Positions 23,401 through 62,375 of a stretch of DNA of 64,000 bases are shown here, piece by piece. The stretch covers positions 417,159 to 481,158 of the forward strand of contig NW_004797800.1 of assembly GCF_000002075.1 (NCBI RefSeq). The letters are read 5' to 3'. A program made the position numbers and the translations under genes. How positions within the stretch are numbered: position 1 is the first letter of the stretch; each line of letters starts with the position of its first letter. The notes below the pieces were generated by a model that worked only from the letters and a program-made list of their open reading frames with translations, had not been told where the DNA came from and ran no database searches. The stretch is from Aplysia californica (taxonomy: Eukaryota).

Positions 23401-26400
23401 GGAAAATGCCAGTTTCTTCAGTTTCATTATTTTGACGAGCGCCTGATTTCACCACGCTGCCTCACATATATTTATATAACATATTACTTGAAAAAAACAT
23501 CCTTTGATGGCATTCTCTAAGTTTGCATAGCTACAACTTTCATAAACTTTCTTCATATCTTACGGTAAAACTTTTCAGTGTGTTTGGGGAGGGGAAGATG
23601 GATTGGTGCCTGGTGGTGGTTTATTTCTTTTTTCTTTCTAACTTTCACATGTTTTGTTCTTTTAGGGTCCCTGTTGCTGTCTTACAGAAACAGTTCTCCC
23701 AAGTGTCAAAAACCCTGGTTGGCATAATCACTCATTGTGCTTCCAACAAGGAAATCTTAGCTCCTCTTAAGCCAGTAAGTATTTTCTTGTGGAATTTATT
23801 TCTAAGAGAATGGGTTAAAAGATTTTGTAGGTTTATGCTAGTGCTTTATCAAGCACGCTCGTTACTCGCGAGTGGCATACTGCTTGGTACACTGCCGCTT
23901 GAGCGAGAGACGGAGATGCCAACCAGTACGATTTTACGTATTTTAGTACGATTTTTGGCCGAAAATACACGAATACAACTTTTCATGAAAAAATATGCAT
24001 CCTGGAATGCGAAAAATACGAGATTCAGCTTGGGCGGGTAAACCTAATTATCTCAAGTCCCTTCTTTTGTCAAAATAGTATCAGTATCGCAGAACTGGAG
24101 TATTTGAAAACCAAGTCCGATGTGGTCAGTAAGTTAAATTTTGCCGGTCGCGATCGTATATTCATTCAGCTTTTCCCCGTGCGGAGAGTACGTTTCACTT
24201 TCACGCGAATAGGCAGCTATGGCGGAAGCGTATGTGACACCGAGGCTCGATGGAGAAAATCAAGATCTACTTTCGCTTTCGTTACCACCAAGAAGTTTGC
24301 CAGCAGTTGTCTGATAACGCAACATTTGTGGCATGCAGGTTGTGCAGTATAAACGCAATGTCGCCGTGCAAATTAAATGTAAGAAATACTCGGACTCGTC
24401 GCTCTGCTGTCACTTGTGGGGNNNNNNNNNNNNNNNNNNNNNNNNNNNNNNNNNNNNNNNNNNNNNNNNNNNNNNNNNNNNNNNNNNNNNNNNNNNNNNN
24501 NNNNNNNNNNNNNNNNNNNNNNNNNNNNNNNNNNNNNNNNNNNNNNNNNNNNNNNNNNNNNNNNNNNNNNNNNNNNNNNNNNNNNNNNNNNNNNNNNNNN
24601 NNNNNNNNNNNNNNNNNNNNNNNNNNNNNNNNNNNNNNNNNNNNNNNNNNNNNNNNNNNNNNNNNNNNNNNNNNNNNNNNNNNNNNNNNNNNNNNNNNNN
24701 NNNNNNNNNNNNNNNNNNNNNNNNNNNNNNNNNNNNNNNNNNNNNNNNNNNNNNNNNNNNNNNNNNNNNNNNNNNNNNNNNNNNNNNNNNNNNNNNNNNN
24801 NNNNNNNNNNNNNNNNNNNNNNNNNNNNNNNNNNNNNNNNNNNNNNNNNNNNNNNNNNNNNNNNNNNNNNNNNNNNNNNNNNNNNNNNNNNNNNNNNNNN
24901 NNNNNNNNNNNNNNNNNNNNNNNNNNNNNNNNNNNNNNNNNNNNNNNNNNNNNNNNNNNNNNNNNNNNNNNNNNNNNNNNNNNNNNNNNNNNNNNNNNNN
25001 NNNNNNNNNNNNNNNNNNNNNNNNNNNNNNNNNNNNNNNNNNNNNNNNNNNNNNNNNNNNNNNNNNNNNNNNNNNNNNNNNNNNNNNNNNNNNNNNNNNN
25101 NNNNNNNNNNNNNNNNNNNNNNNNNNNNNNNNNNNNNNNNNATGGATACATGTATATTGTACGCGTGTGTGCTCCCTTTTTCGAGCTGGTGAGCTAGTAA
25201 TTTATTTTCAGGAAATATTGCTGGACACCCTGAACATTTTACTATTACTGGTTAGTCGGTGGGTCGTGGGGAATACACATTTTCCCCTGAAAATACACAT
25301 TTTCATGTTTCCCAATACTCATTTCAGTTTTCTGTGGTTGGCATCTCTGGAGAGAGGTGTTGGTGAAAGAAGCACTTTCATAGCGGTATTTAGGGGGGAA
25401 AAAATATTTGAAAAAATCTCCCCTCCATTTATACCTCTCCTCCCCTCCTGTCACTTAGATGTTACGTCAATGTGCAGTGTGTTTTTCTTATGCAGCACTA
25501 TAATGGGTTGGGGTGAGGACGGTGGGTAAATTCGCTTGGATTGTTTTTATTTCATTGAATAGCAGGCAGTGACATCAAAGTGTATAGGCCTGAGAGTTAA
25601 TCTCCTTGGGTTAGTCGGTAAATTAGGTTACTTTTAAAGTTATGTGTCGGGCAGATGTACTAGTACTTGTTCTTAGCGTCTTTTTAAAAAATACTCTTTT
25701 TGCTCAAGTTAATCATTTAGAGGACTTTATGTGTGTGTAGTATGTAGTGAGTCATGACACCAGGAAAGAGCTTTTGTTTTTGCTCTGAATTAAATGTTCC
25801 CTACGAAAGTATTTATTATGTTTGTACATAGTATTTGAATAAATGGAACTGAAGCGCAAAATAAAATAATAAAAATAAACAGATGCATCAAAGAAAAAAC
25901 AAAACTAAAAAGAGAATCCAGAGGAGAGGCTGATGCAAATAAGGCCCCTTTCGAAGATCCATACTCCCCCCTTCTACACATTTAGCTGATTAGATTGCCT
26001 CCCTTGAAGTTCATCCTGCCCTGTGACAAGTAAGAGCGTTTAACTCTATTTAGTAGCGTTCCTTAGCTCAAGTGCTCGAGTAGTATCAAGCCTTGCATCG
26101 AGCGTGCAGTAGAGTATCGAGCAGTGCACAGCACTAGTTTATGCCCAATGTGGAACCTTATATAATGAGTACCTGGGGTGTCTATCCATTACAGACTTTT
26201 GATATTGCAATGATACATTGTAACACCCTAACATTTCTTTTAAGAAGTTAATAAGACCAAGTGAACAATTTTTTTCATTGTGATCTCTCTTTCGTAGATG
26301 CAAATGTTCTTTCAATTACAAAAAGTTTTTGGGAATTCAATCGTTCACCTTTATGTGTTGTCGTTTAGATCAATCTGCGTCTGCTTTTAGTAATGGTGTT

Positions 26401-35741: not shown

Positions 35742-38700
35742 TCATGGGGTATTAGCTACGGCAAGTTGCGTCAGACTAATGAAGACTTGACCCAAAGCTT
35801 GCTGGATGCTCTGGACGATAGTTTTGCTAAAGCATTTGACATTACAGGTTGATGCGCAGACAGACATTCGGCTTGTGCAGACAAGCTGGTTGAGGGTGTG
35901 TTTATTTTTGGCCTCACAGTCCGTTTTGGAGGTCACGCAATTGTTGAGACACGTGGACTGGCATTCGCAGGTCGGTCGGCAGATACTCTTGCATGTGGCC
36001 TTAAAGGTATCACAGCTGAGCAAGGGGTTCACGTCAATGCAGAAGGCACCTAAGGTGTCACACATCATGCTACAGCCATCTCCACAGACTGAGCTGCCTG
36101 AGGCCTGATCCTGAGCTAGGACAGCTCCGACCAGAAGAGCAGTGCAGAGAAACACAGTGGCTGTGGATGGGGAAAGAGGGAATGAGTTTGGTTTCGCATA
36201 ATGAAGTTTTTGGCTTCTCATCAACCTTGATTTATGTGCAAGAGGGAAAAGAAATGGATTCAAACATGATGAGACATTGGGTCACACCACAGGTTCTATT
36301 TCTATTTTATAATTTATTTGAGATCCACTGTTCTTCTTCTTTGTGTTCACCTGCTAGATATCAGGGGTAGTCAACTGCTGGTTCTTCAACCTGCAGTACA
36401 ACTGATTTGTACATATCTGACCAATTTTCCTACTTCATAGGGCTCCTTGCCTTGAGACAGCTACATTCCGAATTCAAAGGCACTCTGTATGTTTTTTTAA
36501 ATAGGACTAGAGTATTTTCTGTTTTGGTTGGAATTTTGCTCGGATGGTGGCCGAAGTCAACTCTTGTTTTTATAACCACCAAGGGATCTATTAATGTGCA
36601 GTGCGCAACTTGCACACAGGACCTACGAGATTTTTTACCATTATCTGAGAAGGCTTGGGATTCAATATTACTTTCCAAAGATCAGGTGCGTGGCTGAAAG
36701 ACAGCAGTAAGAAGGAACCGGGAGTAGCAGTAGATACAGTCGGGAGTAAGGAGGGGAGGAGCAACCCGTGGGGGGGGGGGGGGGGAGAGAAGAATGCAGA
36801 TGACATGACAGGTCTAGAGAACAAGACGAGGTGAAATGAGATTATTATTTTTTTTTTTGTAAAAAAAAATTTTGTTGGGTTGCTGTCCGGTTTCGATTTT
36901 GGGACATTTTGAATGAGAGGGGAAGACCGTACCTCAAGACCTCGAGAGCTCCCGCACATTCATTTGATAAAAACAAACTTCGTAGTCTCTATACACTACA
37001 GTGAGGGTCCTTTGGGTTTTAACTGTTCCCTGTGCTGTCTGTCCAATTTATGTTCCTTGAATATGGCTCACAAAGTTTTTGTTAATTTTTAATATAAGTG
37101 GCATTGTCAGAAACAGTCACTTTTTCTTTGTCTATTTGGGTTTAATTATCGCATCTGACACATTTTTAGTGTTGATGCAGAGTAAGTAAAGATGGTGGAG
37201 GGCAGTAAAATAATCTTCTGTTCAAATTAATCGACATAGTCCGGCAAGAACTTGTTAATTGCATTAGTGCGAATGTCACCCACAGGTGGTTTCTGTTGAA
37301 TTTGTTAATACAGTAGGTTTTTTTTTGTCATTTAAGTTTGAAAATTACCATAGCTGTGTTTGCATGCTAGTGTTTATTAAGTTTTCAGAAAAGAATCATA
37401 TTATACTGTGTATTGTCATGTTCCAGGCATGCAGGGAGGGAGGGAGGGGATAGAAAGATAACTTAGTAGAAGCAGAACCCTCTCTAATGATGTGTTATAA
37501 AAAGATTGAACGACTGAGATGGGATGTTCCAATTTTGTCTAATTCAGCAAGTGTCTTGCTTACCGTCGCCCCCTCTGTTAAATGCAGAATCATAATATCA
37601 TGTCTGGCCAAGATTACAACTTTTGTACTTGGAATTAAAATAGGTGATTGGCCAATGAATGAAATGGTGTTTCAGAAATAAAGTTATCAAATAATGGTCG
37701 GTTCTGATTTCGTCACAGTAGTTCCAATTTTATCTTTTGCTGATTGCAATTTTGATGCATGCCTTTGAATTTGGTGTAGAAATCCAGGGTGGAGTACAGT
37801 GGTACTGTTGAGGCTCTTTTTTCTTGGGGGGGGGGATGTGTTTAGTATCAAGGTGATCATCTTGTGTTTAATTTTTCAAGTTTATTTCCTATATTTTCAA
37901 ATCCCCAAGTTGTTTAGCTGATAACAATTGCAATATTGTCAAACCTGTCCATAATGGTCACTCAGGATCACAGAGAGAGGGACCATTGTAGACATGTGGT
38001 CTCTATGGACAGGGTCGCATGTTGACCCATCCCACCACTAAATGAGTTTGCTCTAACAACCCTATTTCTGAAACTTACAAACCAAATGCCTTTCCGTCCC
38101 GACTGCCTGTGCTGCTAACTCTTTTTTTTGGGTTTTTTTTTGAATCCGGTGTCCTTCCTTACTTCTTGCAATATCACATTAACTTTTTACTCATTGCATA
38201 TGCATGTACGCCACAGTGGCTGTCATTTGGTAAACACAAATTTTGTTTTTTCTCATCATTTTGGTCTCAAAAAGCAATGTCGGACTAAAATTATGTACCC
38301 ACTTTTCCAAACCATGCAGAAGATGGTAGTTTCATTGCCAAGGGAGAATTTTTATCGAGTATGTCCATCTCTCTACTTGGATGTTGTATCCCTTTCAGCT
38401 CAGGTTGGCCTGACAGGCAGGGTTGAAGAAGCCAACCTTCAAAATAATCTAAACTGAGTTGACGAGGGTATAAATCTTGTGCAATTACAATTGTGTAATT
38501 ACATGGTGGAATCAGGCGTCAAGTTTTTGGGCATATTTGGTTTTGGTATAATCTTAAAACGTGTTTATCTATCTTGGTTTAAAAAAACAACAAAAAAACA
38601 CCCATCTCTCTTAAATAGAAGTCAAGATATGTAATTGATGGAGGTGGGGTTCATTTGGTTTCAGATGTAATATTAAAAAGAAAATAGCCGTCTACGTTTA

Positions 38701-39307
38701 GTGACTTCCAAAGCTGTAGTGCTCACAATAATTTGTAAATCACCGTTGTACAGAGCAATTACTTATGAAAGATTTCTTACAATGGAACTGTTTTTGGTTG
38801 TCGGCTTAGCAATACTGCAATTAAAGTGCTGTCTAGAATTTGGCTTGATAAACAATGGCCTGTGTTTTGTCAGCTAATGTGTTGAATTTTTGATTGGCCA
38901 GCGAGACAGGTGATTTCGTGTGTTTTTTAGTCATTTGACTGGGCAGAATTTTTGGTCTATTTTGTATAAAAGTTGGGGAAAGGATTTTACATGGGTGTGT
39001 TGGTGGTTGGGTGGGTGCTCTGGTGTGGTTTGCTCCTTTTTTGGTATGAAACATCTACTGTCCCTATCTCTGCTTCTTCTTCCTTTTCTTTTTTTTTTTG
39101 TTTTTTTGTTACTCTCTTGTAATATCTCTAATCTTCGGCATTTATATGACCTTATTGCGTTGCAAGTGCTGTGAAACGCTAACTGAAAGAAAGAATATGT
39201 TGGGATGCAATTGGAACACCCTACCTAATTACCATGTATTTCTAATGCTCAATTAGAAATAACAAAACAAGCAAACGGGGCTAAAAGAACTCACCGAATT
39301 TGTTCAT
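35742..39307 (-). CDS. Secreted 16-Cys protein, copy A (divergent paralog), 143 aa, two exons
   Basis: Exon 1 39307-39295 (ATGAACAAATTCG|gtgagt) plus exon 2 36160-35742 (ctttccccatccacag|CC). Gives signal peptide MNKFATVFLCTALLVGAVLA then QDQASG and 16 Cys. TATAAATA 39384-39377; AATAAA near 35612-35622. Confidence 0.88.
36520..36955 (-). mobile_element. SINE copy in the intron of gene A
   Basis: Reverse complement matches head and body of the 11821 element. Confidence 0.75.
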
Positions 39308-59625: not shown

Positions 59626-61988
59626 TTATGCTGCGGCGGCGGCCTTGGTCACACCGGCGAGGGCTTGACCCAAAGCTTGCTGGATGCCCTGGGTGATGGC
59701 TTGACCAGCGCAGGTGACAGGACAGGCTGATGTGCAGACAGACACTTGGCCTTTGCAGATGATCTGGTTGAAGCTGTTCGCGTTTTGGGCCTCGCATGCG
59801 GCGTTCCTGCTGTGGCAGTTGGCGAGGCATTTGGCGTTGCAGGAACAGGTCTGTCCGCAGGCACCGTTGCAGGCAGCTTTGTTGGCAGCACAGCTGATCA
59901 GGGGGTAGACATCCACGCACAGGGAGCCAATGGTCTCACACAACAGGCTGCATCCGTCTCCACAGAGTGCGGTACCAGCGTCTTGAGCCATGACAGCTCC
60001 GACCAGAACGGCGGCGGATAGAAATACAATGGCTGGGGATGGGGAAAAGGGCGAATGAGTTTGGTGTTGCATAAGAGAATACATTTTTGCCTTTTGATGG
60101 GTATTGATTTATGTTGGGGAAAAAAGACCCGAATTTAGCTAAAATAAGACAATTGCTCGTGCTACTTGTTCTTTTTTCTAGTTGGATGCTTTTGTAACGT
60201 CTCAGAACTTTGTTACCTTCGTTGTTGGTGGTTGGCGAGTGTTATGGTGTGGTTACGAAAAGAAACACATCGACTTTGTGTCTATACATTTTATACTGTT
60301 AAATCGCCAATCTGATTATTTAAAGATAAGATACCTTGGAATGTAATACAGCTGAGCCTGTCAAGACGGCCACCTTTCAACCCCCCCCCCTTCCAATCCC
60401 CACCCTGCGTTTTTCCCTTTATAATTGCACTGAACAAAATGATAACCTGTCCAACGCGGTCATGGTCATTTAATTATTTTTTTTACCAGCAGCCCAAAAC
60501 TTGTCTAAGATGACATGCAAACTTCTCACCCCCGATGCTATGCCATAGATTGTTATATCGACCCAGACGCTGAGGACGAGCGTCATAATCCATTCACCCT
60601 GTCTTTATTGTTAGTCCCTCATGTTCGCTCCCACTGTTTACCCAACTTGACCAGTCGGTATCGAATTTTCAGGTGCTTGTGAGAGAGGCGTGTGAACCGT
60701 CATAATCCATTAAACCGCCCTTAGCTCTAACCATATACGAATCATAAAGGGCACCAACATGTAATTCTGACAGAAATGTGGGGGCGACCAATTTATTTGT
60801 TTTACCATGACACTCTGCCGTCTTCGTCTAACGCATTTGGTCTTGTTTTACGCTTGCACACTCTCTTCTTCGTCTGATACACGTCGTGGAATTTAACTTT
60901 CACAGCAGCTGTGAAACATCCATTTCCACCTTTTCCCCAAAGGGAGAGACAAAACCCCCGAACATTCTAATGGGCTTTACGTCTGTCTTAAGCTTGCTGT
61001 CTCCGGTGGCGACACCAGAATGGAATGTTTTTTGGTGGCTTTTTTTTTTCATTTTGATCAGTCAAACCTGAGACGATAACTTGTCTAAGACGGCCACTTC
61101 CCAATTGCATTGTTGTACAAACAAGACATTGACGTCACTAAACGTGCATTGGAGGCTCCTTTTCCTGTTGTATAAAACCCTATCTCTCGATAGGTTTACG
61201 CTCAAATTTGTCTGCCCCCTATGTACTTTATTAATGGAAACGACCTATACACTGACTCTTTACGTTACAGAGGTGTTTTCTCGTTTGTCTTTGTCANNNN
61301 NNNNNNNNNNNNNNNNNNNNNNNNNNNNNNNNNNNNNNNNNNNNNNNNNNNNNNNNNNNNNNNNNNNNNNNNNNNNNNNNNNNNNNNNNNNNNNNNNNNN
61401 NNNNNNNNNNNNNNNNNNNNNNNNNNNNNNNNNNNNNNNNNNNNNNNNNNNNNNNNNNNNNNNNNNNNNNNNNNNNNNNNNNNNNNNNNNNNNNNNNNNN
61501 NNNNNNNNNNNNNNNNNNNNNNNCTGTCGGTCCACTTTTTTGTTCTGTGAATATCGTCGGCGAAATTATTATCATGAGTTGTGACTGTAATCGCCATCCC
61601 CTGAATTTTGGCGGATTGTTAGAGGGCACTACTGGTACGGTCTGTTCCTGTTCTTTTCGTCTGTTGTTTCTGTTTATCTGTCTTTCTTCTTCCCTGCGCT
61701 ACGTGACCGTTATTGTGTCCACGCCCTTCTATTTACTTAAGGAAATCCCTGAAAGTAAGTTTTCCCGTCTCAATTGAAATATAATTTTAGCTACTAATAT
61801 GTTATCAGTGGGGATGTAGATTGAGTAAAAGAGGTGCAAGGCAGTCGAAAAGTCTCTTGTTCAAAGTAATTTAAACAGTCGAGTAACTTAAAGGAACTCA
61901 ATTTTTGTTAATATCATTCGTGTTATTGTCACCCAGAGGTGGTCTCCGTTGTCCCATTTGTTGAGAGAGAGAGGGGGGGGAGGAAAGG

Positions 61989-62024
<36 letters not shown>

Positions 62025-62375
62025 GAGAGAAAGAGAGACAGAGACAGACGTTAACAAAGTAGCAAAGTAAAGAAAACCCTTTCTGACTATTTAAAAAAAC
62101 AACTGAACACTTAGGGTTGGACGTCCCAATCCCGTTAGAATCAGTTGAGTAAGTGTATTGTTTACCCACGCTCCATTGTATATGCCAAATTACAGTTTGC
62201 GTCCCTCCTCTATTACAACTTTTTGAAAAAACCCTCAAAATAGCTGACAGTTGTTTAGTGAACCCTCTCTAAAGATGTTTGGTTTTTGTTTTAGATTGAA
62301 CTACTAAATCAGAATTTTCGGACAGAAATGAGAAAATAACAAGTAAAGTTAAGAGAACTCACCGAATTTGTTCAT
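59626..62375 (-). CDS. Secreted 16-Cys protein, copy D, 139 aa, two exons
   Basis: Exon 1 62375-62363 (ATGAACAAATTCG|gtgagt) plus exon 2 60032-59626. TATAAATA 62480-62473; AATAAA 59495-59490. Confidence 0.9.

Follow-up and report, generated by a model that had tools for sequence, protein, structure and literature searches.

The 64,000-nucleotide stretch of the Aplysia californica genome analyzed here (RefSeq assembly GCF_000002075.1, contig NW_004797800.1, positions 417,159 to 481,158 of the forward strand), which we refer to as the window, contains on its minus strand a real two-exon gene for a secreted preprotein of 143 amino acids. We call this gene copy A, its three paralogues in the window being B, C, and D. 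The mature part of its product carries 16 Cys residues in two mirror-symmetric modules and is best described as a more elaborate disulfide-stapled helical hairpin, in which two ladders of nested disulfides would share a central helix. We consider this explanation as a whole, an Aplysia two-exon gene encoding a secreted double-ladder helical protein, likely to be correct. If true, the architecture is an undescribed one, in which 85 residues hold eight nested disulfides and two hairpins have one helix in common.

As for the gene, a minus-strand frame is open from 35742 to 36263 and its translation contains the 16 Cys. The coding part of exon 2 (35742-36160, minus strand, including the TGA stop codon at 35742-35744) is defined by this frame and by its match to P0001, an unnamed protein of 143 amino acids that has a UniParc entry and is present in a public protein collection. 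This exon encodes all of the mature protein together with the remainder of the signal peptide, and its product is 100% identical to P0001 over 138 amino acids. The coding part of exon 1, located by a pattern search (39295-39307, minus strand), consists of the ATG and 10 further bases, which together encode M-N-K-F and supply the first base of an Ala codon. It is directly followed by a GT donor at 39294-39293, while the AG acceptor lies at 36161 and exon 2 begins at 36160. The phase-1 intron of ~3.1 kb between them (36161-39294, minus strand), which runs from the GT donor to a cacAG acceptor, is assigned from sequence reading, the position of exon 1, and agreement with P0001, exon 1 joined to exon 2 giving the N-terminus of that protein. 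The full-length product was read from the P0001 entry, not from a hand-made exon join. By eye, it starts with a 20-residue signal peptide (exon 2 share at 36114-36160, minus strand, by translation) that shows an n-region, a hydrophobic core, and small residues at positions -3 and -1, and that ends in AVLA before Q-D-Q, leaving a mature chain of about 123 amino acids. An AATAAA motif is found about 120 bases beyond the stop codon.

The spacing of the Cys residues is highly regular. Module 1 reads C-x3-C-x3-C-x6-C-x8-C-x6-C-x3-C-x3-C, and a single residue joins it to module 2, which reads C-x3-C-x3-C-x6-C-x12-C-x6-C-x3-C-x3-C. This is the mirror spacing that an earlier note on this DNA had claimed, and translation of 35832-36086 on the minus strand bears it out exactly; the position that had been given for it, 35840-36090, was correct to a few bases. 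On the basis of a six-frame pattern scan, the family alignment, and AlphaFold2, module 1 (C1 to C8; 35967-36086, minus strand) would comprise helix A, an 8-residue loop with an invariant Pro, and the first half of a central helix, while module 2 (C9 to C16; 35832-35963, minus strand) would continue along the rest of the central helix and pass through a tight turn into the start of helix C. When the whole window was scanned in six frames, the pattern was found only in copy A and the three paralogues. For eight Cys with fixed ends, mirror symmetry has a chance probability of 3.5e-4 in module 1 and 2.5e-4 in module 2, and recurrence of the same half-pattern in module 2 would be a further 1 in 1330 event. 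Moreover, all 16 Cys and one loop Pro are invariant in 14 paralogues that are only 25-48% identical to copy A, so the Cys pattern is real and not a chance product. Throughout these paralogues, loop 1 has 8 residues, whereas loop 2 varies from 10 to 15. The internal duplication that had also been proposed is upheld in the Cys spacing, but not in the remaining residues, whose likeness between the two modules does not exceed that of position-shuffled controls (first helices, p = 0.50; second helices, p = 0.24). The repeat may date from an ancient duplication, or it may reflect structural convergence.

Structural modeling supports a helical hairpin for each module, as the earlier note had envisaged. 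AlphaFold2 run with 43 family sequences yields an all-helical model with no β-sheet (predicted local distance difference test, pLDDT, 86.8; predicted template modeling score, pTM, 0.68), in which the helix limits bracket the four Cys-bearing segments. A run with the 14 paralogues gave the same three helices with a pLDDT of 72. The helices span residues 6-22 (A), 33-68 (central, 36 residues), and 72-119 (C), with C1 to C4 located on or at the end of helix A, C5 to C12 on the central helix, and C13 to C16 on helix C. The model has three helices, and not the four previously suggested, since the helix that closes module 1 runs on without a break as the one that opens module 2. The two stapled hairpins are thus predicted to share one uninterrupted central helix and to form a three-helix rod. 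Helix C runs on without Cys to residue 119, and this amphipathic C-terminal run (35745-35831, minus strand; from alignment, AlphaFold2, and composition), which displays a conserved hydrophobic stripe with a 3-4 residue spacing and a nearly invariant Gln, is an addition to the earlier reading, in which such a helix had not been considered.

Simple helix geometry places partner Cys at identical heights of 0, 6, 12, and 22.5 Å on antiparallel helices. It also places the two Cys stripes of the central helix about 70 degrees apart, so that the helix C tail can adjoin helix A, beside which it may dock. The residues between the Cys are 40-62% Gly, Ala, Ser, or Thr, which suits close helix packing, and helix A retains some large hydrophobic side chains. 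When the two models were used for fold searches, only generic long-helix matches were returned (Foldseek against the PDB, E of at least 0.6; Atlas search, template modeling (TM) score of 0.58 or less), and the best Z of a wide VIA-align search, 7.6, is below the tool's own meaningful level for helical proteins. None of these matches, all of them generic long helices, was accepted as a relative, and no solved structural relative was found.

Evidence for the disulfide connectivity comes from Cys losses among full-length members, which we compiled from the 43-sequence family alignment and 13 rows added to it. Wherever family Cys are missing from a full-length member, exactly two are gone, and these are always mirror partners. 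C4 and C5 are missing together in P0020 from Elysia chlorotica, in P0027 and P0044 from Plakobranchus, and in P0030; C10 and C15 in P0019 and P0025, which belong to different clades and so represent two independent losses; C11 and C14 in P0031 from Physella and in P0038; and C12 and C13 in P0033 and in an entire second Aplysia subfamily of at least 11 loci. This amounts to at least five independent co-losses. With a probability of 8/120 that a random pair is a mirror pair, the chance of this for all five is about 1e-6. These co-losses support the pairs C4-C5, C10-C15, C11-C14, and C12-C13, and C9-C16 would follow by elimination because the other three pairs of module 2 are assigned. The remaining three pairs, C1-C8, C2-C7, and C3-C6, are presumed from the symmetry of module 1. 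The nested scheme that the earlier note had drawn for each module (C1-C8, C2-C7, C3-C6, and C4-C5) therefore stands in graded form, with four pairs backed by co-loss, one by elimination, and three by symmetry, while non-nested connectivity finds no echo in the co-losses, all of which involve mirror pairs. Natural 14-Cys variants already point to the rungs that can be dispensed with.

Together, these findings suggest how the protein might be built. Upon entry into the endoplasmic reticulum (ER), the 16 Cys would oxidize to eight disulfides, four of which (C1-C8, C2-C7, C3-C6, and C4-C5) would link the central helix, in its first half, to helix A, and four (C9-C16, C10-C15, C11-C14, and C12-C13), in its second half, to helix C, with the rungs at equal heights on partner helices (0, 6, 12, and 22.5 Å). 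The helix C tail would fold back beside helix A, turning one half of the rod into a small three-helix bundle. The outcome would be an extracellular scaffold of great stability and resistance to proteases, on the surface of which the residues other than Cys can diverge freely among paralogues.

How well does this double ladder stand up to other explanations of the same sequence? That copy A is non-functional, a chance open frame or a decaying pseudogene, has next to no probability. It is the fastest-evolving member of its tandem array, with ratios of nonsynonymous to synonymous substitution rates (dN/dS) of 0.44-0.57 against its paralogues compared with 0.10-0.40 among the other copies, but these values are still below 1, so that copy A is constrained even though it evolves fastest. 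Its frame, splice sites, and signal peptide are all intact, it keeps all 16 Cys and the loop Pro, and an identical 143-amino acid protein stands in a public collection. More weight attaches to the points that speak against the ladders themselves. C1-C8, C2-C7, and C3-C6, three of the eight pairs, find no co-loss support in the family; AlphaFold2 models no disulfide bonds, and the S-S pairs are presumed; and P0028 and P0035 have an odd 17th Cys in their mature part, and therefore free thiols or dimers are possible in some members. P0006, which lacks C6, C8, C9, and C16, is an apparent exception to paired loss. We do not count it as true variation, since a single base change in a Cys codon accounts for each loss and all 16 Cys are kept in the cluster mates P0039 and P0040 (at least 90% identity), and we take these losses to be read errors. 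The other points would suit a disulfide-rich protein that is not two nested ladders, with crossed, inter-module, or intermolecular bonds, or with a different fold. Such a protein is improbable, as the four co-lost pairs are each mirror pairs, the two AlphaFold2 runs agree on the helices with a confidence that grows with alignment depth, and partner Cys on antiparallel helices come to lie at exactly the same height.

The earlier note had itself raised another possibility, free-thiol metal binding as in the bacterial Csp copper-storage proteins. In such a metal store, the 16 Cys would stay reduced on the inside of a helical bundle and bind a soft metal such as Cu(I), as in Csp proteins or metallothioneins. 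Csp proteins are four-helix bundles with reduced thiols lining the core. Csp1 and Csp3 resemble the 16-Cys protein in being all-helical with many Cys in stripes along helix faces, their i+4/i+7 stripes included, and Csp3 (5nqm) is among the weak Foldseek matches. However, that match is at noise level (E = 1.2, TM 0.26), the model is a three-helix rod without an enclosed four-helix core, the ER signal peptide of a eukaryote points to an oxidizing folding compartment, and no member matches any Pfam family, Csp-type included. In addition, Cys are kept and lost only in mirror pairs, with a count that is nearly always even (16 or 14) in full-length members, which fits disulfide partners and not the ligands of a metal cluster. 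Metal binding by the 16-Cys protein thus appears unlikely, and a metal store very improbable. Overall, we infer that the 16 Cys are disulfide-bonded, in keeping with the double ladder.

The 16-Cys protein belongs to none of the families named earlier, although it works like them. Most disulfide-rich small proteins are β-rich or knotted; all-helical examples stapled more than two or three times are, to our knowledge, rare, and we know of no description of a hairpin with four evenly registered rungs, let alone of one that occurs twice on a shared helix. In attractin, a water-borne pheromone, work by Schein in 2001 and by Garimella in 2003 reportedly revealed a helical hairpin whose staples are the nested disulfides I-VI, II-V, and III-IV. 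Attractin is a 58-residue Aplysia pheromone with three intrachain disulfides, whose precursor consists of a signal peptide and a single product (PMC3484142). In contrast to its 6 Cys, three disulfides, and single-copy precursor, the copy A protein has ~123 mature residues, 16 Cys, two predicted four-rung ladders on a shared helix, a Cys-free tail, and a family of at least 27 loci; no Pfam or sequence relationship to attractin is seen in the 43 members, nor any structural match. The α-hairpinins and Cs-α/α toxins adopt a helix-loop-helix with the pattern XnC1X3C2XnC3X3C4Xn and nested C1-C4 and C2-C3 bonds (PMC7191063), examples of the latter being the κ-hefutoxins, OmTx, and Conus flf14/vil14a. 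Their motif, C-x3-C ... C-x3-C, is a sub-pattern of each of our modules, for which a helix-loop-helix is likewise predicted. However, they are peptides of ~22-50 residues with two disulfides and one hairpin, and the α-hairpinins are short plant defense peptides with exactly four Cys, whereas copy A encodes an animal protein of ~123 amino acids, near neutral, with eight Cys and four rungs per module and two fused hairpins, and with no detectable homology to them. The nearest precedent for a four-disulfide hairpin is neurotoxin B-IV of Cerebratulus lacteus, a 55-residue helical hairpin with four disulfides. It is a single hairpin and a basic nemertean toxin; Pfam and PDB sequence searches reveal no link to it, and no further comparison was made. 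Mirror-placed Cys motifs joined by two nested disulfides also occur in the helix-loop-helix hairpins of the twin-CX3C and twin-CX9C proteins (small Tims, Cox17, and CHCH proteins), which reside in the mitochondrial intermembrane space. These are imported into mitochondria and oxidized by Mia40, in contrast to the copy A protein with its hydrophobic N-terminal ER signal peptide, four rungs per hairpin, and lack of a Pfam match. Csp proteins, too, are set apart by the three-helix model, the ER secretory route, and the paired conservation and loss of Cys in our family.

We delimited the family by a profile search of 1.84 billion representative proteins, which returned 38 representatives at E <= 1e-3. 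P0001 matches the paralogue profile over its whole mature domain (E = 2.1e-37), and copy A displays the two mirror eight-Cys modules joined by one residue, the signal peptide (by eye), and the Cys-free amphipathic C-terminal helix. The named relatives, A. californica XP_012944359 and proteins from E. chlorotica, E. crispata, Plakobranchus ocellatus, and Physella acuta, are all from heterobranch gastropods and all labeled uncharacterized or hypothetical, while the others are open frames from ocean metatranscriptomes and metagenomes. By its named members, this appears to be an uncharacterized family that is so far found in heterobranch gastropods. In a word-index protein search, the single protein retrieves itself only and the alignment retrieves 7 proteins. 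An ESM Atlas search by features gave no usable match, and a sequence search of the PDB gave nothing with the single protein and only noise at E >= 0.28 with the profile. In a Pfam scan of all 43 members, no family passed and only five chance-level matches appeared at E <= 1; the VWF C8 and ShKT domains, after which UniRef automatically labels P0020 (C8-like) and P0034 (ShKT), were both absent from that scan. Exact look-up of contigs encoding P0001 returned no record, and for three relatives only short metagenome or metatranscriptome contigs without context. Literature searches by accession and locus tag yielded nothing, and a topical search no paper describing the family.

Two observations concern the planktonic sequences. 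Many planktonic relatives (P0006, P0008, P0009, P0017, P0025, P0026, P0032, and P0040) have basic C-termini, in some cases preceded by Gly (...G-R-K, ...R-R-R-K, ...G-K-R-K), which resemble the carboxypeptidase-trimming or amidation signals of regulated secretion, whereas the C-terminus of the window's Aplysia copies is poly-Ala or ...NTP. Besides, P0006 and P0041, which form one 90% cluster, show single-base changes of Cys codons to F, G, S, R, and W that their cluster mates lack. These are probably read or assembly errors and would mislead automatic surveys of Cys patterns.

Within Aplysia, the family is sizeable. We searched the A. californica assembly (927,310,431 bases in 4,332 contigs) with the single protein, which gave 15 matches, nine of which form a same-strand tandem series on the contig of the window, and with the 43-sequence profile, which gave 29 exon-level matches corresponding to at least 27 loci, four of them in the window. 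Copy A is the most divergent member of its tandem array. The other three window copies are on the minus strand: paralogue B, with an open frame containing exon 2 at 41344-41826, Cys modules at 41428-41682, and a candidate exon 1 at 43862-43876; paralogue C, at 48746-49255 with Cys modules at 48830-49084, for which the exon 1 pattern search of the window located no exon 1; and paralogue D, at 59626-60108 with Cys modules at 59710-59964 and a candidate exon 1 at 62361-62375. Exon 2 is 99-100% identical among B, C, and D (synonymous divergence, dS, 0.02-0.04), compared with roughly 65-85% identity, gaps counted, in the flanking intron and 3' sequence. This pattern fits gene conversion limited to the exon, or very strong coding selection, in these three copies.

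What might such a protein do? By analogy with attractin, it would be a stable secreted extracellular factor, and stapled hairpin toxins and defense peptides point in the same direction; most likely, it acts in soluble form outside the animal's cells. Our single best guess, a tentative one, is that it serves as an attractin-like cue carried by water or mucus, and with low confidence we place a chemical-cue role slightly ahead of defense or matrix roles, which are nearly as probable. Two points count against this proposal. The function is a guess drawn from analogy, and the near-neutral charge of the family (net charge of -4 to +3, near zero or weakly acidic; isoelectric point, pI, mostly 4.6-7.6) indicates no particular role, although it argues against a classic cationic antimicrobial peptide. 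A host-defense or anti-predator effector, be it an antimicrobial, a protease inhibitor, or a channel-blocking toxin, like the plant α-hairpinins and the Cs-α/α toxins of scorpions and cone snails, seems somewhat less likely: the family lacks cationic character, all pairs tested have a dN/dS below 1, and known hairpin toxins reach only a third to a quarter of the length of the protein. Such a role would nevertheless suit the fixed Cys framework, the divergent residues between the Cys, and the tandem expansion, a pattern typical of defense and venom peptide families, and the stapled hairpins known so far act as antimicrobials, inhibit trypsin, or block K+ channels (PMC7191063). An abundant structural component of mucus, egg-cordon jelly, or the shell or periostracum matrix is a comparably doubtful candidate. 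The near identity of the B, C, and D exons amid diverged flanks would suit a high dosage of one product, small residues abound in the surface and tail, some tails ending in poly-Ala, and transcripts are common enough to be assembled from ocean metatranscriptomes. On the other hand, the protein is small and looks monomeric, and it has no repeats, no cross-linking motifs, and no strong acidic or basic character. To return to the chemical-cue proposal, one could speculate, with considerable reserve, that the double-ladder rod arose in heterobranch gastropods and became a diversified set of cues parallel to attractin, in which gene copies give either dosage (B, C, and D) or new specificities (A).

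An important implication of the ladders, if confirmed, is that the family would offer a helical scaffold of natural origin and high regularity, probably hyperstable, from which peptide engineers and those who study helix stapling could profit. For Aplysia, a model animal that relies on the same construction principle in its known protein pheromones, it would also mean a sizeable lineage-restricted family of secreted proteins.

Other findings in the window and the genome are of a more minor nature. The window includes 3,762 N, and the overlapping long open reading frames (ORFs) on both strands at 24250-25529 are artefacts of an assembly gap (an N run), which rules them out as genes; no Pfam match was obtained for the remaining long ORFs of the window. 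The second Aplysia subfamily comprises at least 11 single-exon loci, with the start codon in the same open frame, and its members have 14 Cys, lacking exactly C12 and C13. Five of these loci are on contig C212, within about 26 kb and in both orientations, two each are on contigs C759 and C162, and one each on contigs C625 and C19. The distant member P0011, which is the RefSeq protein XP_012944359 of A. californica, maps exon by exon to contig C830 with 83-97% identity, the lower values falling at exon edges. Its locus (C830:294450-310254) has three coding exons with an intron within the Cys domain, unlike the genes of the window's subfamily, in which the whole Cys domain is in one exon. A second copy of this type of gene lies about 14 kb away, on the opposite strand.

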